Shown piece by piece: positions 3,335-61,265 of a stretch of DNA of 64,000 nt. The DNA is from Octopus sinensis. Taxonomy: Eukaryota. Where the stretch lies: contig NC_042998.1 in assembly GCF_006345805.1 (NCBI RefSeq), positions 84,134,001 through 84,198,000 of the forward strand. The letters run 5' to 3'. A program made the position numbers and the translations under genes. Below the pieces are notes generated by a model, which searched no databases, was not told the origin of the DNA, and was given only the letters and a program-made list of their open reading frames with translations. Every line of letters starts with the position of its first letter. Position 1 is the first letter of the stretch.

Positions 3335-3405
3335 ACATAGAAATGACTTTGGGGGTTTTCTGAGTTACCTGAATTATATTTGCATGATTACAGAACAGAC
3401 GTAGC

Positions 3406-3466
<61 letters not shown>

Positions 3467-3535
3467 TACGTCTGTTCTGTAATCATGCAAACAGAATTCA
3501 GGTAACTCAGAAAACCCCCAAAGTCATTTCTATGT
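3335..3535. repeat. Fold-back element: ~69-bp near-perfect inverted repeats around a (CT)n loop
   Basis: 3335-3403 acatagaaatgactttgggggttttctgag...cagacgta versus 3467-3535 tacgtctg...ctcagaaaacccccaaagtcatttctatgt. Confidence 0.85.
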
Positions 3536-3857
3536 ATAATTACTGATTAACTGGATATTTAATACCATAGAAGAAATGACGCGGATGATAAGAATAAGAA
3601 CCAAACAGCCAGCTTTTACAAAGCCACTATTCAGCCCACTAGAAATAGCAGATAAATACCCTTAAACCAATCTTAAACCATCTTTAAACTGAACAGATTG
3701 TGTAACGAGGTTCTAGATACATTGTCTAAAATATAAGATAGGATAGTTATTATAGGAATGCTCAGATCGTAGATCTCCTTGATCAGGATTAATCTGACGC
3801 TAATCATCAACATCACTGTCGTCGAACAGATAGCCTATAGATTAACTAGGCAACAAA

Positions 3858-4646
3858 CTAGCAGAAACGTTAGCACGCCGAGCGAAATGCTTAGCGGTAT
3901 TTCGTCTGTCGTTACGTTCTGAGTTCAAATTCAGCCGATGTCGACTTCGCCTTTCATCCTGCGGGGTAGATTAAATTAAGTACCAGTTACGCACTGCGGT
4001 CGATGTAATCGACTTAATCCGTTTGTCTGTCCTTGTTTGTCCCTTCTGTGTTTAGCCCCTTGTGGGTAGTAAAGAAATAGGTATTTCGTCTGTCTTTATG
4101 TTCTGAGTTCAAATTCAGCCGAGATTGACTTTGCCTTACATCCTTTCGGAGTCGATTAAATAAGTACCAGTTAGGCACTGGGGTCGATATAATCGACTTA
4201 ATCCGTTTGTCTTTCCTTGTTTGTCCTCTCTGTGTTTAGCTCCTTGTGGGTAGTAAAGAAATAGGTATTTCGTCAGTCTTTACGTTCTGAGTTCAAATTC
4301 AGCCGAGGTCTACTTTGCCTTTCAATCAATTGGTGCTCGATAAAAGTCGATCTAATCGACTGGCCCCCTCCCCAAAAAATTCGGGTCTTGTGCTTAGATT
4401 AGAAAAGAATTTCTCAGGCGGCGAGCTGGCAAAAACGTTAGCACCCCGGGCGAAACGCTTAGCAGTATTTCGTCTGCCGCTACGTTCCGAGTTCAAATTC
4501 CGCCGAAGTCGACTTTGCCTTTCATCCTTACGGGGGTCGATAAATTAAGTACCAGTTATGCACTGGGGTCTATGTAATCGACTTAATCCGTTGTCTGTCC
4601 TTGTTTGTCCCCTCTGTGGGTAGTAAAGAAATAGGTATTTCGTCTG
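3858..4646 (+). mobile_element. Nested/tandem array of tRNA-derived MetaSINE-like elements
   Basis: Four ~185-bp bodies each start at GTATTTCGTC(T/A)G and contain gagttcaaattc (B box) and gcctttcatcctttcggggtcgataa (resembles the Meta domain). Three bodies end in a Tx1-like tail. Confidence 0.8.
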
Positions 4647-4788
4647 TGTGAGTTTGTATTTATTAGTAATTATTATTGGAGTGCAAATAGGTTTAAGTTT
4701 CTATTGACTGTTTTTGTGTTATTTTCTGTTATAATTATTGTTCCCGTTATAATTAGTTGTGTGATAGTCTTCGTTCGAAAACTATCGT

Positions 4789-6395
4789 ATGTTTTCCACT
4801 GGGGGGAAAACATTAATTGCTGGCAAGATGCCGAAAAGTGTAACTTCGTCTGTCGAAGAGTCGTCAACCAATAGAGAGGCAAAAAAGGTTGAAACCTTAA
4901 TATTTGGCGATATTTCTGATCCTTCTGAAAGTGAATTTCCCCAACCATCAATGTGTACTGTTATTTCTTTATTGCCCGCAAGGAGCTAAACATAGAGGGG
5001 ACAAACAATGACAGACAAAGGGATTAAGTCGATTACATCGACCCCAGTGCGTAACTGGTACTTAATTTATCGACCCCGAAAGGATGAAAGGCAAAGTCGA
5101 TCTCGGCGGAATTTGAACTCAGAACGTAACGGCAGACGAAATACCGCTAAGCATTTCGCCCGGCGTGCTAACGTTTCTCGCCACCTTAAATGTGTACTGT
5201 TGCAAAGAGGAATATTGACGTGAAAAGCCTTCAAACAGAAGTAAATAAACAAAAAAGAAGTTTTGCGTCGGCGGCTGGAGATGGAACCCGCCAGCTGTCG
5301 ACAAACAAAAATGACCTCATAAAGTACAAAGATATGATAACAATTGAAGACGGTGTTGTGAAAGTTCAACCCCCGGAAGAACTATTAATGTTAGAAAAAA
5401 GAAAAACAATTATTTTTAAAGCTTACTATCTAAAAGAAAAAAATTGATCGAGTGAGCGAAGAGAAAATTGAGAAGTGCTTGAAACCCATCTGGCATGATA
5501 TCAAATACCTAGCCAGAGGGAAGAAGTTTGGTACTATCGAAGTACGACTACAAGATATAGAAAGTGCACAAATGCACTCAGTTAAATCTTTAGAAGCAGA
5601 GGGCGTTGTTTTAATTCCAATATATATGGGAATGAGGATGTCAAAGATACGTATACCAAGAATCCCACCTCAAGTCGACCCTGTGTGGTTGATGGCGGCA
5701 GTCCTGGCAAAAAAAGGAAGATAATATAACGCTCCTTCAGGCTACCGTCACAGAAAAGGCTTATTGAACCGGTCAAACGGTTCACCTAATACAAGCAGAA
5801 CAATCAATTTTAGAACAGTTCCCGGAGAAAATAGAAATTGGGGAGGAATTCCTAAACGTATTCATTGAGCGACGTAAGCCCCGATGTTTCCAGTGTGGCC
5901 AGCTGGGCCATATAAAAAAACACTGTAGAGACGGCGAGGAAGAATCCGATGGTGATGAGGAGGAGAGAGAGAGAAACAGAAGAAAAGAAATCAACTAACA
6001 CAACAAAAAAAAATGGAAAACTCAAATCAACAAAAACAGGTCGAACTAAGACCAAAAAAACTGCGAAAAGAGACAAACCAAAAATAGTAAAGGAAGCAGA
6101 AGAGAGAGGGATAGTCGCGTTATACAGTAAAAATGAAGATTTAATGAGTGAAATAAAAGCGAAAAAAATCAGCCAGTAGGATTGCAGAATTTTCTAATAA
6201 ATATCAGAACTACGAGTTCTACGAAATGGATAAAAAGACTCATAATGTATTACCTAACACGTAAAGAAAGTCGGTGTCGGTGATGAGATTGAATTTTAAT
6301 CAATCCATTTTTCAAGACTTGCCTCCTTCGACCCTATGTCAAGAAAAGGTGGAGAGACCCTCTCCACAAGACACCCCGGATTAAATATGTAAGTA
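4789..6395 (+). pseudogene. Tx1 ORF1 (gag-like, CCHC zinc knuckle), disrupted by a SINE insertion and stops
   Basis: Fragments 4789-4989, 5190-5447 and 5452-5724; knuckle tgtttccagtgtggccagctgggccatata at ~5885-5930; homologous to 59897-60247 and 61882-62640. Confidence 0.75.
4963..5188 (-). mobile_element. MetaSINE-like copy with Tx1-derived tail, inserted into Tx1 ORF1
   Basis: 13-bp TSD AATGTGTACTGTT at 4950-4962 and 5189-5201; near-complete head-to-tail SINE. Confidence 0.85.
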
Positions 6396-9300
6396 ATGTC
6401 TATTCACATTGGTTGTGTAAATGTTCGTGGCGTGATGTCTAGTTGGAAGCAAAGGCGCTTCCTAAATGTCATCAGGGCAAGAACATTGGATGTGATTGTT
6501 GCAACGGAAACCTCGGTGAAAGGGCCAAGAGATCTGCTCCTCCTCCTGAACGGCTATGAGAAATACGTTTCTCCTAGTCGGGCGGGAGGTGGGGGTGGGA
6601 TATTGGTCATACTAAAAAGAAACCGGGTAGCCGAGAAAAAGTTTTTTCTGATCCAGAAGGCAGGTTGGTCGTCCTTGACCTGAGATTCAGTTGTGGCAAG
6701 ATAATCAGGGTGGTTGCAATTTATGCACCCAATGTTATGGGCCCGCAAAGTTAATATTTTCGTGACCTGGGCAAGTTCCTGGCCACGTCACATTCGCTAG
6801 TACTGATAGGAGATTTTAACACAATCTGTGACGCACTCACAGATTGTGTTGGCTCGAACATGGATAGAAAATATAACCCTGGCTTACGGGATCTGCTGAG
6901 TCACTTTCAGCTAGCAAATCCATATAGGTTGGAACACCCGAACACTCCACAGTAGACGTGGTCAAATAGTGATAGGTCTTCCAGAACATATATAGATAGT
7001 GTTTTAATTAGAAAAACAGATAAGTCCATAGCTAAGTGTCCACAGTTTTATCTAGTCAGTTACAGTGATCACAAGATGGTTACCTGTAAGCTGACTGTAG
7101 ATAAGTTGCATAGACAGGGATCGCCGTTTGGCGATTGAGGAGTACAGAAAGCGGATCGAGATGTTAATATAGAAGGCATTGACAGGTACCATCATAAATA
7201 ACAAATGGTGTTACGCCCTAAAAAGAACCATAAAATATGAGTCTATTAGGTTTAGCATAAGTTTAGCTAAGAATAAGAGACGGTCTAGTTAAGGAACTAG
7301 AAGCCTGGAGGACTGGTAATGCGGACCAAGTGAAGGTGAAGAGACTGGAGTTGAACCAGCAACTTGAAGCCCAACACATGGGAATATTGCCAGAGCTAAG
7401 TTACGTATGGTGGGAAGTAAGGAATCAAGGCCGCTGGATGGACCCGAGTGGTGGAAGCTAGACAAGGAAATAGTTTCACTATTCAGTCTTTGACGAATGA
7501 AAATGGTGTCTTGGTAAACGAACCCGAGGAAATGTGTGAAGCCTTTCAGGAGTACTTCACCTAGCTGTTCGGAGGTGATGAAGGTCCTGATGGTGGGGAA
7601 GTCCTCAAGGACTTTCTTGTCGGGCTGTCGGGCTGCCATACCTCTCGGGGTCGAATGCGGAGTCTTGCAAAGGGCCGATGACGCCTGTGAAGGTGATGGA
7701 GGCTATGACCGACTGTAAAGCGGGTAAATCGCCGGGACTTGATGGTCTTCCGTACGAGCTGTATAAATGTATGCCAGACTTGTTCGGGCACCTACTGGCT
7801 GACGTGTACGCGAACTGGCAACAGAATGGGTTTATCCCCAGGTCTGTACGCCGGGAAGTAGTGACTTTGGTCAGAAAGGACTCGGACAAGGGGGACGTTT
7901 TAGATAATTTCAGGTCCATTACTCTGTTAAACGCAGAAGTGAAGATTTTGGCCAAGGTCTTAGCAAAAAGGTTGGCGAGTGTCGTGAATGGTATAGTCAG
8001 GGAGGCACAGATATGTGCCATCCCATGTTGAACCATTCAGGATAATCTCCATCTTATTCGCTATACCATAGAGAGGGTTGGTGTTAAATCTGACAAAGGT
8101 GGGGCATTGGTCCATTTGGACCAGTCTAAAGCTTTTGATAGGGTTGACCATCGATACCTGGCGACTGCGCTTGCGCGGTTCGGCCTAGGCCTTGGCTTCC
8201 TCATGTGGTTTATCGCTTTGTATCACAACATTGACTCGATAGTTCGGGTGAACGGTTTCCTTTCGAAGCCGTTCTGCATCAGGCGCTCGGTTCGTCAAGT
8301 AAGTCCGCTCTCACCACTTTTGTATGTGGTGGCTCTTGAGCTCCAACTGCGAAGGTTGAGTGGCATCCCGAGAGAACCAGGTTTAGCGGAGTTTGTTACA
8401 GCTTACGTGGACGATATCACTATCAGCGTAACCACAGTAGCACGCCTACGTGAAGTGGATAAGGTTATTGAGGTTTACGAGACGGTGGCAGGAGCAAAGA
8501 TTAACCGGGAAAAGTTGGTCGGCTTGCAGCTCGGCACCTGGGTTGGCAAGTCCATGCCTTCAGACAGCGTTGTTGGGTGCTGGACAGAGGGACCGGTTAA
8601 CTAACTGGGAGTCTGGTTTGGACCAGGCTTCCAGATAGAGAAGAACTGGACGGAGGTTTCGAGTAGGGTGGCTGCAGTAGTCAAGACCTGGTCTTATCGG
8701 TGGCTATCCCTGAAAGGGAGGGTGGAGGTGGCCACTGTGTTTATCGCATCGGTCATTACTTACCGCCTGACCGTCGTGCCCTGTCCGGATTCGTGGTTGA
8801 TCAGGTTGGAGAGACAACTCTTTCGCTTTTTGTGGAAGAGCAGGTCACCACTTGTGAAACGCTCTGTATGTTGTCAAAAGCCGTTAAAGGGAGGTTTAGG
8901 GATGCTTTGATTAATAATGCGCAGGCATGCGTTGAGGTTGAGGCATCTCTGGATTCTCCTGGGTGGTGAACGGATGTGGTCTCTGCTGGCCAAACAAATG
9001 TTCCCTGAGTTTAAAAGTTTTTGGGAAGAGGAAGCCTGGCGTTTTCGTAGACCGAGGCCGAGTGAATGGCATAAAGAGTTCCGTAAGGCCCTCCTACTAT
9101 TCCGGCTCTCGGGCAACGCCAGCGGTGAGGGTTCTACACGAATTTTATATAGTGGGTTGGTAGAGTCTGAATGTGACGATGACCTGGGGGCGACTCTAGG
9201 TCTTGGGTATAGCCTGTTCCATCGTATATTCGGATTGAGGACATTGGACAATTTTCAAAAGTCCTTGACCTGGCAATGTTACAGAGGTGCCTTGCCCGTT

Positions 9301-9744
9301 TGGGATAAGCTCGAAAGACATGGTAAGCGTCAGCCCCCGACCTGTCCAAGATGCGGGGAAGACAGGGGAACCGTCTCTCACGCTATTGTCCAGTGTCTGG
9401 AGGTATCTGAAATGTGGGTTTATGCTGAACACCTGTTGTCCGGTGAAGGAAGAGTACGGCTGTCGACTGAGTCAATTATAAAAATTGACCCACCAGAAGT
9501 TTTAACAAGCGAAGGTAAGAGTTGTTTTCTCACGGTTGTAGCAATAGCGAAAGAGGCAGTATGGAAAACTAGGATAAAAAGCATTAAGACAGGCAACTTT
9601 ATGTTCTGTCACGATTTACGATCATTTTTTACTTTTCCTTTGAAAAGGAAGGTCTGACTGGAGAAGAGGTGTCTGTTGGAGAGTATGTTCAAAAAGAGAT
9701 GGAAGCATGTTGTGCGTGCAAGGAACCGTGTGAATAGGCTATAA
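6396..9744 (+). pseudogene. Tx1 ORF2 (APE endonuclease, reverse transcriptase, zinc finger) with several stops and frameshifts
   Basis: MSIHIGCVNVRG...ATET (APE); KSPGLDG, FRSITLLN, LDQSKAFDRVDH, AYVDD (RT); CYRGALPVWDKL..CPRC. Confidence 0.9.
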
Positions 9745-9968
9745 AAGAAGAACAAAAACAAGGTACCAGCAATAGATTGGTGGGGTTGGAGCGTGGCCTG
9801 ATCATCACTACATTTGTGTTGTCTCTGCATTGTTAATTTCATTCAATTTTTTAATATTTTATATAATTTCTATATTCATATTCTATGTAAAATCATAACA
9901 TATTACTGATCCCAATCAGTTGTTTTGTCCATTTCTGTGTTTGGCCCCTTGTGGGTAGTAAAGAAATT

Positions 9969-10310
9969 GGTATTTCGCCGAGGTCAACTTTGCCTTTCAT
10001 CCTTTCGAGGTCGATAAAATAAGCACTAGTTACGCACTGGGGTCGATCTAATCGACTAGCCCTTCCCCCAAAATTTCAGGCCTTGTGCCTAGTGAAGAAA
10101 AGATTATACTATTGCTTTGAAAGCAGCGAACTGGCAGAATTGTTAACACGCCGGGCGAAATGCTTAGCGGTATTTCGTCTTTCGCTAAGTTCTGAATTTT
10201 AATTTCACCGAGGTCGACTTCGCCTTTCAGGGTCGATTAAATAAGTAGCAGTTACGCACTAGGTTCGATGTAATCGACTTAATCCCTTCCCCCAAATTTG
10301 AGGCCTTGTG
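9969..10310 (+). mobile_element. MetaSINE-like remnants (3' part of the LINE's target SINE plus a second copy)
   Basis: ggtatttcg ccgaggtcaactttgcctttcatcc... with the standard tail ccttccccc aaaatttcaggccttgtgcc. Confidence 0.75.
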
Positions 10311-11157
10311 CTTCCCGTAGAAAGAATTATATTATTGCTTTGCATTATTCTATTATTATCCAATTATTTCAGGTTTATAGAGCTCTTTTTATGGGTTCTA
10401 AACATTCAGCAGATTCTTTCACCTTTATTGAAAGATTTAATATTTCAATATTTTCCACCTTCTTTTAATTTTCCCAATATTTTCCGTTAAAAAATAGTTA
10501 TGAAAATATCTTCATTTTGCCCCCTAGAAACGTTGTTAATGCCATATTTTCATTTGCTTCTATCTATTTTGTAACTTAACTCAACTCTCTTTTCATCACA
10601 AACCACTGCATAATTTCAATCCGCTTTCATGGGAACTTTAGCCAAATTCAATTACAGAAAACAATATAGGAGCTTTCTGTAGTTGAATTTGTACTCACAC
10701 TTTCTCTCTTTCTAACTTTCTTAAATCAGTATTCTCTTCCTCTCACTATTTTATTCACTTGTCGACTACAAACTTCCTCAACTGAACGACTTTATTTGAA
10801 CTTCTCTTCCTTCACAATCTGGACTTTTTTTCTATTTCACTTACAAAAAATTCAATTCTCATTTATTGTATACTAACTTCGTCTTAGTTTTCTTATCCGA
10901 TATCCATTTTTCTGATTTTAAAAACTAACCATTTATTTCCTTTACTGAACATGCAAAGCTCATTCTGACAAAAACATTATTGCAAAATATCACAGAATAT
11001 TTTTTCATAAGTATCTTCTCTTGATACTAAATACTTTCAGTCCATTATATTGACAGTGTCCTTCCTAGTTTCAGATTTAGCACTTTCAAATTACGAACAA
11101 GCTGAAACTTTGAAGACAAAATCACTATAAAACTTGTATGAGTTTAATAAACATATA

Positions 11158-18029: not shown

Positions 18030-18161
18030 TTGTATTTCGGGACGGTCATTTTTACCCCAAATAAACACACGCACTATATATCTGTTCTTCACTCGATTAT
18101 TACAAATATCTAGTGCGTGTGTTCATTTGGCAAAAAAAAAAACGACTATCCCGAAATACAA
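18030..18161. repeat. Palindromic element, copy 1 (termini TTGTATTTCGGGA / TCCCGAAATACAA)
   Basis: Terminal and subterminal inverted repeats, aataaacacacgca / tgcgtgtgttcatt. Confidence 0.7.
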
Positions 18162-18209
<48 letters not shown>

Positions 18210-18267
18210 GCGTTTGTCGATTTGTGTTGCAAGATTCCTGATGTGAAACCGTGTGTTGAAACATAGT

Positions 18268-18414
18268 TGTATTTCGGGACGTTCGTTTTTGTTTTGTTTT
18301 GTTTTGTTTTTGCCAAATAAACACACGCAGTACATATTTGTAATAATCGGGTGAAGAACGAATATATAGAGCGTGTGTTTATTTGGCAAAAAAAACGACC
18401 GTCCCGAAATACAA
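18268..18414. repeat. Palindromic element, copy 2, inverted relative to copy 1
   Basis: Same termini; the asymmetric core is the reverse complement of that in copy 1. Confidence 0.7.
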
Positions 18415-26579: not shown

Positions 26580-26790
26580 ATAATCCTTTCTATTATAGAC
26601 ACAAGGCCTAGAGTTTGTGGGGAGGGGAAGAGTCGATTACATCGACCCCAGTAATTTATTGATACTTATTTTATCGACCCTGAGAGGATGAAAAGCAAAG
26701 TCGACCTCGGCGGAATTTGAACTCAGAACGTAAAGACAAACGAAAGTGAAATCAACCCTATCAGGATTTGAACTGAGGACGTAAAGATAG
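26580..26790 (-). mobile_element. MetaSINE-like copy with standard tail
   Basis: gatgaaaagcaaagtcgacctcggcggaatttgaactcagaacg. Confidence 0.75.
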
Positions 26791-27177
26791 GAGATAAAAT
26801 TCTGTAAATCATTTCTTTCGGTATTTGTTCCATTTCTGGTGACTCACTGATTCATTTATAATTAAGTAGTATAAATGCAATTTTGTACATAATGACTGTT
26901 CAAAATTAGAGTAAGATCTAGTTGGTTCGAGTTTGCAAACTAAAGGTTATTTCAAGCTGGAGACATTAAAGGAAATAATCAGTTCGTTTAGTCTGGCTTT
27001 CTTTCAAAACAATATTTCGCTTACGGCGGACACATCCCGTCCTTTCAGCCACATCAACGTTCAGTACAACTACGTTCAAACAAAAGCTCTTATCTTCATC
27101 TTACAACAATAGAAACGAGATAATCTATTAAGTTTATTATTTCCATGGAAACCAACTGCAATTTTGATTGAGTTATT

Positions 27178-30348: not shown

Positions 30349-30498
30349 TATATATATGTATATATTATATATATACATTATATATACATAAATATATATA
30401 TACATGTACATTTGTGTGTGTATATATGTATACATACATATATATATACATATATACATACATATATAAATAAGCAAACATGCATATATATATATATA

Positions 30499-30727
30499 TT
30501 TCTTTACTATCCACAAGGGGCTAACCACAGAGAGGAAAAACAAGGAGAGACAAACGGATTAAGTCGATTATATCGACCCCAGTGCGTAACTGGTACTTAA
30601 TTTATCGACCCCGATAGAATGAAAGGCAAAGTCGACCTCGGCGGAATATGAACTAATAACGTAACGGCAGACGAAATACGGCTACGCATTTCACCCGGCG
30701 TTCTAACGTTTCTGCCAGCTCGACGCC
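30499..30727 (-). mobile_element. Full-length MetaSINE-like copy with Tx1-derived tail, lying in (TA)n
   Basis: Head ggcgtcgagctggcagaaacgttag; tail ccccttgtggatagtaaagaaa. Confidence 0.8.
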
Positions 30728-32187: not shown

Positions 32188-32310
32188 ATTCCGCCGAGGT
32201 CGACTTTGCCTTTCATCCTTTCGGGGTCGATAAATTAAGTACCAGTTACGCACTGGGGTCGATATAATCGACTTAATCCGTTTGTCTGTCCTTGTTTTTC
32301 CTCTCTGTGG

Positions 32311-32344
<34 letters not shown>

Positions 32345-32390
32345 CATACACACACGCGCACACATCACACGCACGCACGCACGCACACAC

Positions 32391-32434
<44 letters not shown>

Positions 32435-32561
32435 TCCGCCGAGGTCGACTTTGCCTTTCATCCTTTCGGGGTCGATAAATTAAGTACCAGTTACGCACTG
32501 GGGTCGATATAATCGACTTAATCCGTTTGTCTGTCCTTGTTTTTCCTCTCTGTGGTTATAC

Positions 32562-35348: not shown

Positions 35349-35370
35349 AAGCTTGCTTCCAGTTACATGG

Positions 35371-36079
35371 AAGATATGGAATGTGTGGTCGGTGCATTTA
35401 CAATGAGAAGAGAATGTTGCCATGGCGATACCAGCTCAGGGGCCTATGCAAAGTTGCATAAAGTGTATGGGGAAGTGTACGAGTGGTTCAGACACTTTCA
35501 AGATGGCCGAAAAAATGTCGATATTGACGAACGTTCTTGGAGACCCGCAACCAGCAGAACAGAGATATACATCGCAAACGTGCGTGAAGCTGTGAGGAGA
35601 AATCATCGAACCACCATCCGTGAGTTATCAGCGGATGTGCAAATTAGTTACGGTTCAGTTCAGTCCATTATCACTGAAGATTTGGGTATGAGACGCGTGT
35701 CTGCCACGTTTACGCCAAAACTGCTTTCAGCTGACCAAAAAGACACTCGGGTTTCAGTTGCACAAGATTTCCTTGATTATGTCGAGAACGAGGAAAACTT
35801 TGAAAACTGCGTAGGCCTCTGAGCAGGTATCGCCAGGCTTTTGGCAAAATTCGATACAGGTCTTCTGCTCAACTCTCTGTTTCATGGTCAATGCGACGAT
35901 CACACGCTACACACCTTCCTTCTAAGCACTACTATAGACAGCAGAAGTGAGCTAGAACGTTAAAACTTAGTACGCATACACAGCAGAGTGCAAGGTCAAT
36001 CTGTGCCAAGTGGTTTCACTGTGCGTGCTTTAACTTCGTTATTATGGGAACAGTCCGGATACTTATTGATCAGACCACA
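35371..36079. mobile_element. Rearranged mariner transposon remnant
   Basis: Plus-strand transposase HTH (VYEWFRHFQDGR..DERSWRP..TIRELS..LGMRRVSATFTPKLL). TIR gtggtctgatcaataagtatccggac and start MKQRVEQKTCIEFC are on the minus strand at 35810-36079. Confidence 0.8.
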
Positions 36080-42475: not shown

Positions 42476-43933
42476 TCATCCAACATTAGACTTTGTGTAG
42501 TAAAGAGTACCAAACACTGATGTGGTAAACCAAGCAGCTATAATCCACCAATTCAAAAATGACAGTAATCCACGATACCAAATGGAAGTAAAGATACCAC
42601 GAATGTTTGCTATAGCTGTTGTCACCTGGGCCACAGGATCTGCATGAGTGTTATTCAATTGCGAAAGTAGTGTCGTTGGTTTCATGACATGTTCTACACC
42701 TAAGATGCTCTCCCAAGAGTAATCACCCAAAGTCTTCAACAGAAACGTTAGGAACAATACAAGTAGAATCGGTGTGAAGTACTGAAGAGCCACAAAACAA
42801 AGATAATAGTAAACCCGAGCAATCATCTTCTGGATTTCAATGTTTGAGATACGGCCACTCTCCTTGCGCATAATTTCAACACGTTCATACGCTAGATTCA
42901 AATGGGACTGTAGATATGTACTCATAAGGCCAAAGCGTAACAGAAAAAAAACAGCTATAACTATTAGGCGAGTTGTTTCAAATGCTGATTCACTCATAAT
43001 TTTTGCAGGAGTTCGCCAATGAAGTCCACATAAAAGATCTCGAGCCACTGGCTTCACCCACATTAATAAAATAAACATTGGAAAAACAAAACTGATGTAG
43101 AGAAATGACTGTAAAATAGGCTGACCTTGACTATAGTTTAGAGCATCAACATGCATCTTACCTAAACGAAGTCCAGGAAAAGTGACAAATGCTCCTATAA
43201 AGGCGCATAAAATAGCAAGTATTATTTTGAAAGTTAAAAGGCTTATCGGCCCCTCAGATCCTACCCCTTGTTCTTTCATGAAGACCATAGCGTTTTCTGA
43301 GAAATTTTTATAACCTTTCTCCAAGCCAAATTCCAAGTTATCTTCACTGACAATTAACACTCCCATTGCTGCCACCAAAAAGAAAAATGAGAAAGTGATG
43401 CAGAGAATTCTTTCACCACCATCTTCGGTTTGAAAATAAACAGAAGTCTGCATAAGGAGGATTCTAAAACAGAACCCAAGAACCAACAAACACCAGAGGA
43501 TGCTGACATTTAGCTCTGATCGAGATAATACAGAATAATAAATCTCTGTTATAATGTAGACAATCAAAGCACATAATGAAAAATCCATGAGCCACTGAAA
43601 TTCACCAAAATAGTGGAGTGGTAAAAGATCTTTGGCTTCAACCTTGGCAGTCTCTAAGGTAAAAGAAACACTCCGAGGTACAGTAAAAGACTCCGTTTTT
43701 ACTGCTTCTTGGTTGTTATTCCGTCGATAATCCCTTCGATGTCTTGCTTTTGTTCCTCCACCTCCACTCGAGGGTATTCCAGCAGCAGTCTTTAGTTCTT
43801 CATTTGTAGGATGGAGGTAACGTACCAGACGATTTGACAGAATCCACCTCCCAAACGAGTAATAGCGAGACAGTTTGTACAGAAATGTAAAAGCTATTAA
43901 GCTAAAAATCATCTGCAAACCAAGAACAGCCAT
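42476..43933 (-). CDS. TMEM161B: Transmembrane protein 161 (TMEM161A/B family), 485 aa, uninterrupted CDS
   Basis: Recognised family motifs: YSFGRWIL..RYLHPTNEELK, F.LETAKV....LHYF.EFQWLMDF, GGER..C..F.FFF, TFPGLR, LQSHLN.A, RVYYYLC.VALQY..P. Multiple hydrophobic segments. A/B paralogue label is by resemblance only. Confidence 0.92.
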   Translation of the reverse strand: MAVLGLQMIFSLIAFTFLYKLSRYYSFGRWILSNRLVRYLHPTNEELKTAAGIPSSGGGGTKARHRRDYRRNNNQEAVKTESFTVPRSVSFTLETAKVEAKDLLPLHYFGEFQWLMDFSLCALIVYIITEIYYSVLSRSELNVSILWCLLVLGFCFRILLMQTSVYFQTEDGGERILCITFSFFFLVAAMGVLIVSEDNLEFGLEKGYKNFSENAMVFMKEQGVGSEGPISLLTFKIILAILCAFIGAFVTFPGLRLGKMHVDALNYSQGQPILQSFLYISFVFPMFILLMWVKPVARDLLCGLHWRTPAKIMSESAFETTRLIVIAVFFLLRFGLMSTYLQSHLNLAYERVEIMRKESGRISNIEIQKMIARVYYYLCFVALQYFTPILLVLFLTFLLKTLGDYSWESILGVEHVMKPTTLLSQLNNTHADPVAQVTTAIANIRGIFTSIWYRGLLSFLNWWIIAAWFTTSVFGTLYYTKSNVG

Positions 43934-55299: not shown

Positions 55300-55585
55300 A
55301 GTTTAGGGGAGGAGGTAAGTGATACCAGCGACTCCAATATTTGACTGGTACTTTAGCTTCTCGATCCCAGTAGGATGAAAGGTAAAGTTGACTTCTGCGT
55401 TATTTGAACTCAGAACGTAAAGAGCCGAGCGAAATGCCTATTTCTTTATTACCCACAAGGGGCTAAACACAGATGGGACAGACATGGGTATTAATTCGAT
55501 TACATCGACCCCAGTACGAAAGGATGAACGGCAAAGTCGACCTCGGCGGAATTTGAACACACAACGTAACGGCAGACGAAATACG
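55300..55585 (-). mobile_element. SINE array 3' of the LINE: a Tx1-tailed unit followed by the remainder of a standard SINE
   Basis: Minus strand: gtatttcgtctgccg...ccccttgtgggtaataaagaaatag|gcatttcgctcggctctttacgttctgagttc. Confidence 0.75.
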
Positions 55586-55861
55586 AATTTCTTTATTGCC
55601 CACCGGGGGCCAAACATAGATATGGACAGTACAACTGATGGGATCAGTGAATCGATATGATTTTACATAAATGTGACATCAAAAATAAAATACAATACAT
55701 AAAAATCGAATGGAATACACAGTACAAAAACAATACAAATGAAGCGATGATCAAGTTACGCTCCGATCCCACAAGCCCCGATCTACCGCTGATACCTTTT
55801 TATTTTTCCTTTTTTTTTTTTTTTCCTCGTCTATTCACACGGTTCCTTGCACGCACAACAC

Positions 55862-57952
55862 TCATGCAACATACTTCCATCTCTTTTGGAACGTACACTC
55901 TGACAGACACCTCTTCTCCAGCCACAGTTTCCTTTTCAAATGAAAAGAAACAAAGGATCGTAAATTGTCACCAGAGATAAAGTTGCCTGTCTTAATTCCT
56001 TTTATCCTAGTATTCCATACAGCCTCTTTTGCTATTGCTACAACCGTGAGAAAACAATTCTTACCTTCGTTCGTTAGAACTCCCGGTGGGTCAATTTTTA
56101 TAATTGACTCAGTCGACAGCCGTACTCTTCCTTCGCCGGACAACAGATGTTCAGTATAAGCCCACATTTCAGTTATCTCCGGACACTGAACAATAGCGTG
56201 AGGGACGGTTTCCCTGTCCCCACCGCATCTTGGACAGGTCGGCGACTGACGTTTACCATGTCTTGCGAGCTTATCCCAAACGGGCAAGGCACCTCTGTAG
56301 CATTGCCAGGTTAAGGACTTTTGGAAGTTGTCCAACGTTCTCAACCCGAATGTACGATGAAACAAGCTGTCCAGTTGAATAAATCCGAGACCTAGAGTCG
56401 ACCCCAGGCCATCGTCGCATTCAGACTCTACCAACCCACTATATAAAATCCGTGTGGAACCCCCACCGCTGGCGTTGCCCGAGCGCCGGAACAGCAAGAG
56501 GGCCTTACGGCACTCTTTATGCCACTCACTCGACCTCGGTCTACGAGAACACCAGGCTTCCTGTTCGCAAAAACTCTTGAACTCAGGGAACATTTGTCTG
56601 GCCAGCGGAGACCACACCCGTTCACTATCCAGGAGAATCCAGAGGTGCCTCAACCTCAACGCATGTCTGCGCATCATTAACCAAGGCATCCCTAAACCTC
56701 CATTTAAAGGCTTTTGACAGCAGACAGAGCGTTTCACAAGTGGCGACCTGCCCTTCCACAAAAAGCGAAAGAGCTGTCTCTCCAACCTGATCAACCACGA
56801 ATCCGGACAGGGCACGACAGTCAGGCGGTAGGTAATGACCGATGCGATAAACACATTGGCCACTTCCGCCCTCCCTTTCAGGGATAGCCACCGCCAAGAC
56901 CAAGTCTTGACTACTGCAGCCACCCTGCTCAATACCTCCGTCCAGTTCTTCTCTATCTGGAGCCCTGGTCCAAACCAGACTCCCAGAAACTTAACCGGTC
57001 CCTCCGTCCAGCGCCTAACAGCACTGTCTGAAGGCATCGACTTGCCAACCCAGGTGCCGAGCTGCAAGCCGACCGACTTTTCCCGGTTAATCTTTGCTCC
57101 TGCTACCTCCTCGTAAGCCTCAATAGTCTTACCTACTTCACGTAGGCGTACCACTGTGGTTACACTGATAGTGATATCATCCGCGAAAGCCGTAACAAAC
57201 TCCTCTAGTCCTGGTTCTCTCGGGATGCCACTCAACCTTTGCAGTAATGGCTCGAGAGCCATCACATACAAAAGTGGTGAAAGCGGACATCCTTGACGAA
57301 CCGAGCGTCTGATGCAGAACGGCTTCGAAAGGAAACCGTTCACCCGAACTATCGAGTCAATGTTGTGGTACAAAGCGATAAACCACCTGAGGAAGCCAAG
57401 GCCCAGGCCAAACCGTGCAAGTACAGTCGCTAGGTATCGATGGTCAACCCTATCAAAAGCTTTAGACTGGTCCAAATGCACCAATGCCCCACCTTTGCCA
57501 GATTTATTACCAAACCTCTCTATGGTATAGCGAATAAGATGGAGGGTATCCTGAATGGTTCTGCCTGGGCTGGCACATGTCTGTGCCTCCCCGACTATAC
57601 CATTCGCGACACGCGCCAACCTTTTTGCTAGAACCTTGGCCAAAATCTTCACTTCTGCGTTTAACAGAGTGATGGGCCTGAAATTCTCTAGAACGTCCCC
57701 CTTGTCCGGGTCCTTTCTGACCAACGTCACTACTCCCCGGCGCACAGATCTGGGGATAAACCCATTCTGTTTCCAGTTCGCGTACACGTCAGTCAGTAGT
57801 TGCCCGAACAAGTCTGGCATACATTTATACAGCTCGTACGGAAGACCATCAAGTCCCGGTGACTTACCCGCTTTACAATCGGCCAAAGCCTCCATCACCT
57901 CCTCAAGTGTGATTGGCCCTTCGCAAGACTCCGCATCCGACCCGAGAGGCAC
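55862..57952 (-). CDS. Tx1 ORF2: reverse transcriptase and C-terminal zinc finger (696-aa open segment; the parent ORF2 is frameshifted upstream)
   Basis: KSPGLDG, FRPITLLN, LDQSKAFDRVDH, SVRQGCPLSPLLY, AFADD, KFLGV, CPRCGG.ETVPHAIVQC. Confidence 0.9.
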   Translation of the reverse strand: MPLGSDAESCEGPITLEEVMEALADCKAGKSPGLDGLPYELYKCMPDLFGQLLTDVYANWKQNGFIPRSVRRGVVTLVRKDPDKGDVLENFRPITLLNAEVKILAKVLAKRLARVANGIVGEAQTCASPGRTIQDTLHLIRYTIERFGNKSGKGGALVHLDQSKAFDRVDHRYLATVLARFGLGLGFLRWFIALYHNIDSIVRVNGFLSKPFCIRRSVRQGCPLSPLLYVMALEPLLQRLSGIPREPGLEEFVTAFADDITISVTTVVRLREVGKTIEAYEEVAGAKINREKSVGLQLGTWVGKSMPSDSAVRRWTEGPVKFLGVWFGPGLQIEKNWTEVLSRVAAVVKTWSWRWLSLKGRAEVANVFIASVITYRLTVVPCPDSWLIRLERQLFRFLWKGRSPLVKRSVCCQKPLNGGLGMPWLMMRRHALRLRHLWILLDSERVWSPLARQMFPEFKSFCEQEAWCSRRPRSSEWHKECRKALLLFRRSGNASGGGSTRILYSGLVESECDDGLGSTLGLGFIQLDSLFHRTFGLRTLDNFQKSLTWQCYRGALPVWDKLARHGKRQSPTCPRCGGDRETVPHAIVQCPEITEMWAYTEHLLSGEGRVRLSTESIIKIDPPGVLTNEGKNCFLTVVAIAKEAVWNTRIKGIKTGNFISGDNLRSFVSFHLKRKLWLEKRCLSECTFQKRWKYVA

Positions 57953-59228
57953 GGCAGCCCGGTAAGAAAGTCCTCGAGGGCTCTCCCACCACCAGGACCG
58001 CCGTCACCCCCGAACAGCTGGGCGAAGTACTCCCGACAGACCTCACCATTTTCTCGGGCGTTTATCAAGACACCATTTTGATTCGTCAAAGACCGAATAG
58101 AGGAACTATTTCCTTGCCGAGCTTCCACCACTCGGGCCCATCCAGCGGCTTTGATTCCTTCACTTCCCATTGCACGTAACTTAGCTCTGGTAATACTTCC
58201 CATGTGGTGGGCTTCAAGATGCTGGTTTAACTCCAGTCTTTTCACCCTCGCTTGGTCTGTATTACCAGTCCTCCAGGCTTCTTCTAGTTCCTTAACTAGA
58301 CCATCTCCTATTTTACGTCCCTTCTTAGCTAAACTTATGCTAAACCTAATAGACTCATATTTGATAGCTCTTTTTAGGCTCATTTGTTATTAATGATGGT
58401 ACCTGTTAATGCCCTCTGTATTAACATCTTGATCCGCTTTCTGTACTCCTCAATCGCCAAAAGGGACGTATTGAGTTTCCAGTAGCCAGATCCCTGTCTA
58501 TGCAACTTATCTACCGTCAGTTTACAGGTAACCATCTTGTGGTCACTGTAGCTGACTAGAAAAAACTGTGGACACTCAACTATGGACTTATCTTTTTCTC
58601 TAATTAAAATCCTATCTAGATATGTTCTGGTAGACCCGTCACTATTTGACCACGTCCACTGTGGAGTGTTCGGGTGCTCCAACCTATATGGATCTGCTAG
58701 CTGAAATTGACTTAGCAGATCCCGAAAGCCTGTGTTACATTTTCTGTTCATGTTCGAGTTTGAGCCAACACAATCTGTGTGTGCTGCACATATTGTATTA
58801 GAGTCTCCTAACACTACTAGTGAATGCGACGTGGCTAGGAACTTTCCTAGGCCACGAAAATATTCAGTTTGCGGGCCAATAATGTTTGGTGCATAAATAG
58901 CGACCAGCCTGATTGTCTTGCCATAACTGAATGTCAAGTCGAGAACGACCAGCCTGCCTTCTGGGTCAGAAAAAACCAACTTTTTCTCGGCTACCCGGTT
59001 TCTTTTTAGTAGGACCAACACCCCACCCCCACCTCCCGCCCGACTCGGAGAAACGTATTTCTCGTAGCCGTTCAGGAGGGGGAGCAGATCTCTTGGCCCC
59101 TTCACCCGGGTTTCCGTTGCAACAATTACATCCAAATTTCTCGACCTGATGTCATTCAGAAAGCGTCCTTGCTTCCAGCTTGACAACAGGCCATGAACAT
59201 TTAAACAACCAATGTGAATAGCCATCAC
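57895..59228 (-). pseudogene. Tx1 ORF2 N-terminus (APE endonuclease and linker), broken by a stop and a frameshift
   Basis: IGCLNVHG..ATET..AIYAPN..LGDSN..WTWSN..YLDRIL..SDH..GYWKLN. Confidence 0.88.
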
Positions 59229-60790
59229 TTACCTGTTTAATTAGGATTGTCCGGTGGAGGGGGACCCTCCACTTTTTTTTATCCAGGGTCGGAGGTGGAC
59301 GGTCTTGGGAAATAGATTTGTCAAAATCCCGTCTCACCACCGACACAGAATTATCAGGTGGAGGGGGAATCTCCACCTTTTCCTTTTCTCGCGGGATCGG
59401 AGCTGGTAATCCATGAAATATCGACTTGTTAAAATCTAATCTCAATGAAGATACAGTCTTTCTGTACTTATTTTGTAGAATTCTATAAGTCTTATTTGAG
59501 ACTTCATATATGTCGTAATTGATAAATTCCTCTGAAAGGTTATCAATTTTTTTTACAGTCTTTATGAGTTGAATGTCTCTCATGAGCTCAGTATCTTTAG
59601 TGTATACGGCTATTATGCCTTTTTCTTCTTTTTCTCTTCTGGCAGTCTTTTTGGTCGTTGTTCTGTAGTAGTCGCCGCTCTCGGCTGGGTTGCTGGTTGT
59701 ATTTTTCTTTTGTTTGTTGTTTTTTTCTCATCTGTTTCTTCTTTATCTTCTTCCTCTTTGTCTTTTTTCCTCTTCCTCCTCTTCTTCATTTTCCTTGCAG
59801 TTCCTTCGAATGTGGCCTAATTGACCACATAAAAAACATCGAGGTTTTCGGCCCTCAACAAACACCACGAGGTTCTCCTCCCCTACCTCAATTGTCTCAG
59901 GAATTGTTTGAATTATTTAGGGTCCGCTTGAATGAGAAGATTAATTGTTTTACCATCCCAGCGTGGGTTTTCCGTAGCGGTAGCCTGGAGGAGAGTAATT
60001 TTTCTACCTCTTTGATTAGGACTGCCGCCAACAACCACATAGGTTCGACCTCTGGCGGGACCCTTGTAATTTTTATTCGCGACGTCCTCATCCCCATATA
60101 ATAGGGTATTAACTCCACGTCGTTCGTTTTCAACGTTTCTACTGAGTTCTTGTGTGCTATTTCTTTATTGGTGAACCTTACTTCCACCGTTCCGAATTTT
60201 TTTCCTCTTCTCAGAAATACTACGTCGCCCAAATTGGCTTTAAGCACTTTTCTATTTTCTCTTCTGACATTCTTTCAATTTTTCTATTTTGTAGACAATA
60301 TGTTTTGAAAATTATGTTTTTTTGCTTTCTTCTGTAATAACTTTTGCGGAGGTTCAATTTTCACACTGTTGTCATTATTTCCATCATTTTGCTGTATTTC
60401 ATAATTTCGCTTTTATTCGTCGACAGTATCTGGGTTCCACCCCCAGCAGCCAACGCAAAACTTTTTTTTCCATTTTTTAGTTCTATCTGGATGCTAGGCA
60501 CATCAATTATTCTCTTCGACACAATGCCTTTGTTCTCTGGCAAAGTCGGACTCTTCTGGTGAAAGTTCTGACGAGCTCTCGACACATCTCCAAAAATATC
60601 AAATATATTATCCTCTCTGCTATTCCTTCTTGTAGGGGAAACCCTATTTCCTTGTCTGTAGTTGGCTCCTCGCCGGACATGTATTTCCTCCTCTCAACAG
60701 GAGAAACAAGTATTTCTGCTCCAACGGTAGGCTCCATGCTAGACGACATTCTTCCCCCCAAAGGGGGAATGAACAACGCGTGCTACCACA
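59226..60790 (-). pseudogene. Tx1 ORF1 (gag-like), disrupted
   Basis: FLRRGKKFGTVEVRF..LIPYYMG; knuckle near 59810-59860; homologous to 4789-6395. Confidence 0.75.
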
Positions 60791-60913
60791 AGCACTAAGT
60801 GTTTTCAATTGAAAACTCCAACAGTTAAGTTATTCAACAGTTTAACAAGAAACAACAGTTGTTAACAATATTAACACCACGAAACAGCAATTCTTACTTC
60901 ACGAACACATGTG

Positions 60914-60975
60914 CGGCAGACGAAATACGGCTACGCATTTCGCTCGGCGTGCTAACGTTTCTGCCAGCCCGCCGC
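60914..60975 (-). mobile_element. 5' head of the SINE split by the LINE insertion
   Basis: ggcggcgggctggcagaaacgttagcacgccgagcgaaatgcgtagccgtatttcgtctgccg. Confidence 0.85.
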
Positions 60976-61265
60976 CGTTTCCAAAACGGGCGAAATACTG
61001 TTTGCAGATACTAACGATTCGACCCGTTAGCACGTCGGGCAAAATGCATAGCGACATTTCGTACATCTTTACGTTCTGAGTTCAAATGGCGCCGGGGTCT
61101 ACTTTGCCTTTCATTCTTTCGGGGTCGATAAAATAAATACCTGTTCAGTAATAAGGTCGATGTAATCGACTTACGCCCCTGTCCCGAAACTGTTGAACTT
61201 GTACCAACGTTAGGTAGGATCGGACTTGTACCACGTTTGGTGGGGTCGGAACACTAACTGCGAGA

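Follow-up and report, generated by a model that had tools for sequence, protein, structure and literature searches.

An L1-group LINE and its tail-sharing SINE probably insert at one site within the SINE family itself in Octopus sinensis

Several retroelements have settled on fixed addresses in their host genomes. The long interspersed elements (LINEs) R1 and R2 enter ribosomal DNA by site-specific target-primed reverse transcription, with the 5' junction aided by homology to the upstream target; Mutsu targets 5S and Dewa tRNA arrays. Among short interspersed elements (SINEs), Alu inserts into the A-rich tails of older Alus. LINEs of the Tx1 clade are known to insert sequence-specifically, with other transposons among their targets (PMC4494074): Xenopus Tx1L is found in Tx1D, Keno in U2, and Kibi and Koshi in microsatellites. 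In crocodilians, Tx1-Mar LINEs and the SINE family SINEU share a target, the DNA transposon Mariner-N4_AMi (Kojima 2015, PMC4494074). Here, we analyse a 64,000-nt stretch of the Octopus sinensis genome (contig NC_042998.1, positions 84,134,001 to 84,198,000; hereafter the window), in which an L1-group, Tx1-like LINE probably inserts sequence-specifically into an abundant SINE and is followed there by SINEs that share its tail, giving rise to in-register arrays.

How does the octopus locus compare with these systems? With Tx1-Mar and SINEU it has in common an L1/Tx1-type LINE, SINEs at the same positions of one repeat, and nested LINE/SINE clusters. However, the crocodilian target is a third party and no 3' tail common to LINE and SINE was found, whereas in the octopus the target lies inside the SINE family, the tail is shared and joining is in register. 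The Tx1-clade specialists likewise combine a LINE of the apurinic/apyrimidinic endonuclease (APE) type with sequence-specific insertion into multicopy sequence, but none of the targets of Tx1L, Keno, Kibi/Koshi, Mutsu and Dewa is known to be the LINE's own SINE partner. R1, R2 and their non-autonomous derivatives resemble the octopus pair in the repeated use of a multicopy 'safe' target and in homology-aided 5' joining; R2, however, uses a restriction-like endonuclease and a host-gene target, while the octopus target is another parasite. As in Alu, the SINE makes sequence that attracts its own kind, leading to clusters, but Alu uses low-complexity TTAAAA-like sites and stacks tail-to-head, as do the standard-tail SINEs of the window, whereas the LINE-tailed octopus SINE uses a unique internal 13-nt site and joins in register. 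Finally, in stringent-type pairs with a common 3' tail, such as eel UnaL2 and UnaSINE1 (Kajikawa and Okada 2002), the SINE 3' end also derives from the partner LINE and has a defined end instead of poly(A); such pairs, however, are not known to be site-specific or to stack in register. What is new here is the combination of a target within the SINE partner family, the coincidence of tail sharing and target sharing, and in-register arrays that would be made by homology. A literature search whose scope left out Repbase Reports returned no report of such a self-SINE-targeting LINE.

The receiving element belongs to one SINE family with about 20 copies or fragments in the 64 kb (blastn, with the full-length, 226-nt copy at 5188-4963 as query). 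In its length of ~226 nt, an A-box-like TTAGCACGCCGG and a B-box-like GTTCAAATTCC are readable, and neither ARAGORN nor Rfam recognised a tRNA in the head. The original prediction called the family MetaSINE-like, after a superfamily marked by a 66-bp central Meta-domain. Multiple alignment separates two 3' ends, a standard one (...CCCCAAAATTTCGGGCCTTGTGCCTAG..AGAAAAGAATT) and a second, LINE-type one (...GTTTGTCTGTCCTTGTTTGTCCCCTCTGTGTTTAGCCCCTTGTGGGTAGTAAAGAAAT). The latter, as the original prediction had noticed, matches the 3' ends of both LINEs of the window: the LINE1 terminus is identical to the second-tail consensus at 41/46 positions (31/32 over the last 32) and the LINE2 terminus at 35/46. 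At ≤3 mismatches, the 21-nt tail core occurs seven times in the window against 0 expected, and the end of LINE2 makes an eighth LINE-type 3' end. With homologous 3' termini at the exact ends of both elements, the two appear to form a SINE/LINE pair, in which the LINE-tailed SINE subfamily, carrying the last ~46 nt of the LINE, is the younger of the two SINE subfamilies. LINE-tailed units are 86-94% identical to one another and resident standard halves 69-84%; such a far higher divergence of the standard halves is what one expects if young copies landed in old targets. There is also a resemblance between the standard tail (GGCCTTGTGCCTAG..AGAAAAGAAT) and the LINE-type tail, so that related LINEs are the probable source of both. 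Conservation of the tail core (…TGTG.TA.TAAAGAAAT) extends to another O. sinensis LINE (L003, 56% identical) and to LINEs and a SINE of Argonauta hians (L001).

Both LINEs of the window are full-length but dead copies, their frames split into several open reading frames (ORFs). ORF2 combines an APE endonuclease with a reverse transcriptase (Exo_endo_phos, RVT_1, zf-RVT), and its best match among solved structures is human L1 ORF2p (E = 1.5e-40), with R2 reaching only 3e-21, which places the LINE in the L1 group. Cephalopod L1-like LINEs are labelled L1-Tx1 in the literature, and L1-Tx1 is the only L1-type family listed in published octopus repeat annotations. LINE1 and LINE2 are 86% identical over 3.8 kb of ORF2 and 67% in the ORF1 region, and their 5' untranslated regions cannot be aligned; they are thus distinct subfamilies and represent two independent insertions.

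Where do these LINE-type ends lie? In the window, 6/8 of them (4080, 4264, 4634, 9968, 55586 and 55440) are on target, meaning that GTATTTCG or GCATTTCG (G[T/C]ATTTCG) begins 1-2 nt past the tail. The octamer GTATTTCG corresponds to SINE positions 45-52 and occurs 20 times against 1.9 expected; the target site lies between the A-box-like and B-box-like motifs. At a chance of ~5e-4 per end, six or more of eight tails would land on target with a probability of ~3e-19, and a conservative count of 3/5 loci still gives ~1e-9. At four loci in two species, seven junctions coincide to the nucleotide. Beyond what had been predicted, the LINEs themselves occupy the SINE site. On the 5' side of LINE2, a SINE head (60976-60929) is followed by GTATTTCGTCTGCCG (60928-60914), and the identical 15 nt stand after its 3' end (55584-55570). 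LINE1 has GTATTTCGTCTGT (4635-4647) on its 5' side; on its 3' side, GTATTTCG leads into SINE sequence that starts at position 77 and runs up to a standard tail. Independent copies therefore occupy the same nucleotide of the same target: both LINEs sit at SINE position 44/45, flanked by 13-15 bp target-site duplications (GTATTTCGTCTGY) of SINE sequence, which is direct evidence that the LINE machinery cuts there. A SINE head and a duplicated target upstream of each LINE point to staggered cleavage of a resident SINE. That the bottom strand is opened just 5' of GTATTTCG (position 45) follows from the LINE-type 3' end, which in every case adjoins this base, and the GTATTTCGTCTGY duplications flanking both LINEs place the second nick 13-15 nt downstream.

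In the roughly 100 kb of Octopus sequence examined in total, 2/2 LINEs and 5/8 assessable SINE copies are on target; a published criterion for target specificity asks for >20% of flanks genome-wide in the same repeat (PMC4494074). There are nine recognisable sites with head and target, three of which are occupied in-register junctions and six unoccupied. A scan of metagenome and genome contigs with the junction 17-mer returned only chance matches in microbial contigs, none of them with the SINE.

The three occupied resident SINEs of the window each hold two insertions: SINE and SINE, SINE and LINE1, and LINE2 and SINE. Locus (a), 3858-4412, consists of a head, two LINE-tailed units (u1 and u2) and the resident body with its standard tail (u3). 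Locus (b), 4418-10107, reads head, one LINE-tailed unit, duplication, LINE1 and resident body; locus (c), 60976-55300 on the minus strand, reads head, duplication, LINE2, one LINE-tailed unit and resident body. All junctions are in register, as no inserted SINE unit has a head of its own. The original prediction had each of four tails followed directly by the target and the rest of a SINE. This holds for 4080, 4264 and 55440, where 'AG', then GTATTTCG or GCATTTCG, and the remaining SINE follow; at 4634, 13 nt of target lead into LINE1 instead, and the SINE resumes only at 9970.

Could such arrays have grown, after one on-target insertion, by unequal crossover, replication slippage or gene conversion? 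Units u1, u2 and u3 have in common a private transversion (attcAgcc) that 13 other copies all lack, u2 resembles u3 in having a standard-type 5' part (TCTTTAYG), and a 245-bp tandem duplication of a SINE fragment at 32188-32558 demonstrates that local duplication does occur in the region. The hallmark of unequal crossover, adjacent units more alike than dispersed copies, is however absent: at 91% identity, u1 and u2 stand within the range of dispersed LINE-tailed copies (86-94%), so that recent unequal crossover, on which the original prediction would have fallen, is not supported. Measured against a nine-copy consensus drawn from three species, u1 differs at 14 sites and u2 at 15; they have only two of these in common, and both lie within the first 37 nt and are also present in the resident u3. 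The 5' bases common to u1, u2 and u3 thus fit a target-derived segment or a short conversion tract better than a whole-unit duplication. Nor does crossover explain two LINE subfamilies with duplications at the same nucleotide, or an independent locus in O. vulgaris. As the origin of the arrays we consider it unlikely, even if, given the private variant in three units, unequal crossover may have contributed to them.

The O. vulgaris locus came from a comparison that covered O. vulgaris and O. bimaculoides loci within 10 kb of the gene TMEM161B. An on-target composite (L247, 17755-18165) contains a full LINE-tailed SINE, followed by AAATAG|GTATTTCATCTG and a standard body. It is independent of the loci in the window, lying in a 2.4-kb segment without counterpart in O. 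sinensis, and is flanked as a whole by a single 15-bp duplication, ATATCC[A/G]AA[T/A]GAAGT. The outer duplication makes a second alternative worth considering, namely that SINE-only composites arose in a single retrotransposition, either by a template jump, in which the reverse transcriptase stops near position 45 of one SINE RNA and moves to the 3' end of a LINE-tailed SINE RNA, or from a dimeric master SINE that is read through and copied whole. Chimeric SINEs are known to arise by template jumping (PMC4824008), and read-through transcripts are plausible, as no TTTT terminator stands between the LINE-type tail and the next unit. However, a resident SINE that took a later insertion would show such an outer duplication just as well, and co-inserted halves should be of the same age, whereas the observed halves are unequally diverged (69-84% versus 86-94%). 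The SINE head and the duplicated 13-15 nt target 5' of both LINEs are moreover a signature of staggered cleavage and not of a jump. Taken together, an origin in one retrotransposition event seems improbable. A variant, GTATTTCA, present in both units of the O. vulgaris composite was considered as proof of a target-derived duplication and dropped, being a source-subfamily marker at a CpG site; it is also present in an off-target copy of O. bimaculoides.

That there is no real specificity at all, and that the pattern arises from SINE abundance and an enzyme only loosely drawn to T-rich sites (TATTT, for instance), is very hard to maintain: a related SINE and LINE of Argonauta do end beside the target-like TATTTCAAGG and TATTTTTAAA, and off-target copies exist, but the coincidence of the seven junctions at an identical nucleotide stands against the low chance per end given above, and eight GTATTTCG octamers outside SINE context are all empty.

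Sequence-specific insertion into the SINE is nevertheless not free of difficulties, and several observations weigh against it. The sample is small, with three occupied loci in 64 kb and one in O. vulgaris. Of the eight assessable SINE copies, three are off target (4963 and 30498 in the window; L248 6072 in O. bimaculoides). All three carry ordinary duplications of 13-19 bp. The two in the window, one nested in LINE1 and one in a TA microsatellite, had been recognised from the start as off target, as had their consequence that the target preference, strong as it is, is not absolute. No SINE surrounds the 3' ends of three related LINEs found elsewhere (one in O. sinensis L003, two in Argonauta L001), so that only the LINE1/LINE2 lineage may be site-specific; the off-target SINE copies might be due to other LINE lineages with the same tail. 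At the LINE2 locus, the inserted unit differs from the resident in the first 13 nt (GTATTTCGTCTGC versus GCATTTCGCTCGG) and no simple duplication is visible; as the unit lacks the resident's diverged first 13 nt, joining can also take place before that point, within the head. A hairpin in the tail is at best weak (-3.5 kcal/mol), with no meaningful covariation. Finally, no intact LINE copy was found, and in three protein searches with pieces of the LINE the closest database proteins were ~61% identical; a C-terminal query of 137 aa gave no match, and the exact LINE ORFs were absent from the protein collection searched. Whether on or off target, SINE copies are flanked by target-site duplications, of 13 bp for the copy in LINE1, 19 bp for the O. 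bimaculoides copy (L248, 6072-6303), 15 bp for the O. vulgaris composite and 12 bp for an Argonauta copy; those of the off-target copies are thus about as long as the duplications around the LINEs.

If the LINE and its SINE both insert at position 44/45, how would in-register arrays form? The LINE reverse transcriptase would recognise the shared tail on the SINE RNA and copy this RNA at the same site. After the second nick, homology between target and SINE cDNA would allow the top-strand end (...head+GTATTTCGTCTGY-3') to anneal to the matching internal stretch of the cDNA. The 5' junction would thus be in register, with the unit beginning at position 45 and any cDNA head being lost, and the expected product is head-(body-tail)-GTATTTCG-body-tail without a second head. 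Each event would duplicate the recognised 13 nt and leave two targets, place a LINE-type tail behind a resident promoter-bearing head, rescue truncated cDNAs and turn old SINEs into candidate source genes. The central proposal of the original prediction, that a SINE with the LINE's 3' end lands in a site it contains, regenerates this site and stacks, finds support in the LINE duplications at the site, in the divergence of the array units and in the O. vulgaris composite. Base pairing of the RNA 3' end with the target was weighed as a means of priming and rejected: the primer strand (...CGAAATAC-3') is similar to the tail (AGAAATAG) instead of complementary, and simple annealing of an RNA without read-through would leave the site unexplained.

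Taken further, the pair might constitute a self-reinforcing, parasite-on-parasite loop, in which the LINE's safe harbour is its own SINE partner. Each in-register SINE insertion would take over a resident head with its promoter, make an old standard-tail SINE into a LINE-tailed source gene and double the target, and the subfamily would spread by overwriting its relatives and build arrays without unequal crossover; we put this forward tentatively, as a possibility that we are inclined to doubt. SINEs make up ~12% of the O. vulgaris genome (PMC13282606). The octopus pair would clearly exemplify an APE-type LINE that lands in its own non-autonomous partner, limiting host damage while feeding both parasites, and it suggests how SINE clusters form and how SINE tails turn over. 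In-register arrays will be fragmented or miscounted by repeat annotators, and an APE endonuclease specific for 13 nt would be a natural model for targeted retrotransposon insertion.

Table 1. Features of the SINE arrays, the two LINEs and the off-target SINE copies in the window.
Feature	Position	Strand	Remarks
Resident SINE head, T_a	3858-3896	+	ends ...GCTTAGCG right before the target; blastn q11-44
LINE-tailed unit u1	3897-4080	+	SINE position 45 to end, LINE-type tail, ends ...GGGTAGTAAAGAAATAG
LINE-tailed unit u2	4081-4264	+	structure as u1; 91% identical to u1
Rest of resident T_a, u3	4265-4412	+	GTATTTCG to standard tail; internal deletion
T_b head and in-register LINE-tailed body, u4	4418-4634	+	14-nt internal deletion in tail
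Left target-site duplication of LINE1	4635-4647	+	GTATTTCGTCTGT
LINE1	4648-9968	+	full length, ~5.3 kb including nested SINE; ORFs broken; 3' end ...CCTTGTGGGTAGTAAAGAAATT
Off-target full-length LINE-tailed SINE, nested in LINE1 5' region	4963-5188	-	13-bp duplication AATGTGTACTGTT at 4950-4962 and 5189-5201
Right half of resident T_b	9970-10107	+	GTATTTCG, then position 77 to standard tail; ~24 nt lost at junction
Standalone standard-tail SINE	10122-10330	+	target unoccupied at 10162-10181; duplication ATTATAYTATTGCTTTG
Off-target full-length LINE-tailed SINE in TA microsatellite	30498-30727	-	O. vulgaris ortholog L247 20806-21026
Two identical LINE-tailed SINE fragments	32188-32313, 32433-32558	+	microsatellites cut both ends; target not readable
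Old standard-type SINE body, LINE2 locus	55300-55438	-	starts G-GCATTTCG; original resident target
LINE-tailed SINE unit, LINE2 locus	55439-55584	-	position 45 to tail ...GGGTAATAAAGAAATA; internal deletion
LINE2	55586-60913	-	full length, 5.3 kb; frame broken between pieces
LINE2 RVT_1 and zf-RVT	55862-57952	-	
LINE2 APE endonuclease (Exo_endo_phos)	58380-59228	-	
Left target-site duplication of LINE2	60914-60928	-	GTATTTCGTCTGCCG
Resident SINE head, LINE2 locus	60929-60976	-	

Several features of the SINE family deserve mention in their own right. The tail variants ...GGGCAATAAAG and ...GGCTAATAAAG are mostly off target (window 4963 and 55586; L248 6287; L003 6053), with few copies available, and the variant ...GGGTAGTAAAG is mostly on target, LINE2 being an exception, in numbers too small to judge. 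Standard-tail SINEs stack tail-to-head: T_b begins 5 nt past the tail of T_a (4412-4418), and the SINE at 10122-10330 stands directly after the tail of T_b (10107-10122), with its duplication ATTATAYTATTGCTTTG beginning at the end of that tail. This suggests that the partner enzyme of the standard tail prefers sites adjoining an existing tail. At 26745-26800 on the minus strand, a standard-tail SINE begins at position 48 (TTTCG...), near the LINE target. A diverged SINE fragment (positions ~58-100) stands immediately before it, and no LINE-type tail separates the two; the pair may be a deletion derivative of an old array. The two fragments in the tandem duplication at 32188-32558 lie among TA and CA microsatellites and are 98% identical to the copy at 30498. 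The 2.4-kb segment with the O. vulgaris composite spans L247 17534-19924, opposite L249 20612/20614 of O. sinensis, and its breakpoint differs in O. bimaculoides; the differing breakpoints among the three Octopus species mark it as a site of nested insertions and deletions.

Of the eight GTATTTCG octamers that lie outside SINEs, four belong to the terminal repeats of a small element resembling a miniature inverted-repeat transposable element (MITE), with two copies at 18032-18159 and 18269-18412 (18032-18412 overall) and terminal inverted repeats GTATTTCGGGACG...; no LINE-type tail is found at them. The sole intact gene of the window is TMEM161B, a single exon at 42476-43933 on the minus strand that encodes 485 aa (Pfam Tmemb_161AB, E = 6e-176), with orthologs >90% identical in O. 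vulgaris, O. bimaculoides and Argonauta; it agrees exactly with O. sinensis chromosome CM016860.1. An ORF of 151 aa at 35367-35822 (plus strand) resembles, by eye, the N-terminal part of a mariner-type transposase and has no Pfam match at E ≤ 0.01. At 3340-3545, a near-perfect inverted repeat of ~65 nt surrounds a (CT)n tract and could be a MITE or a hairpin-forming element.
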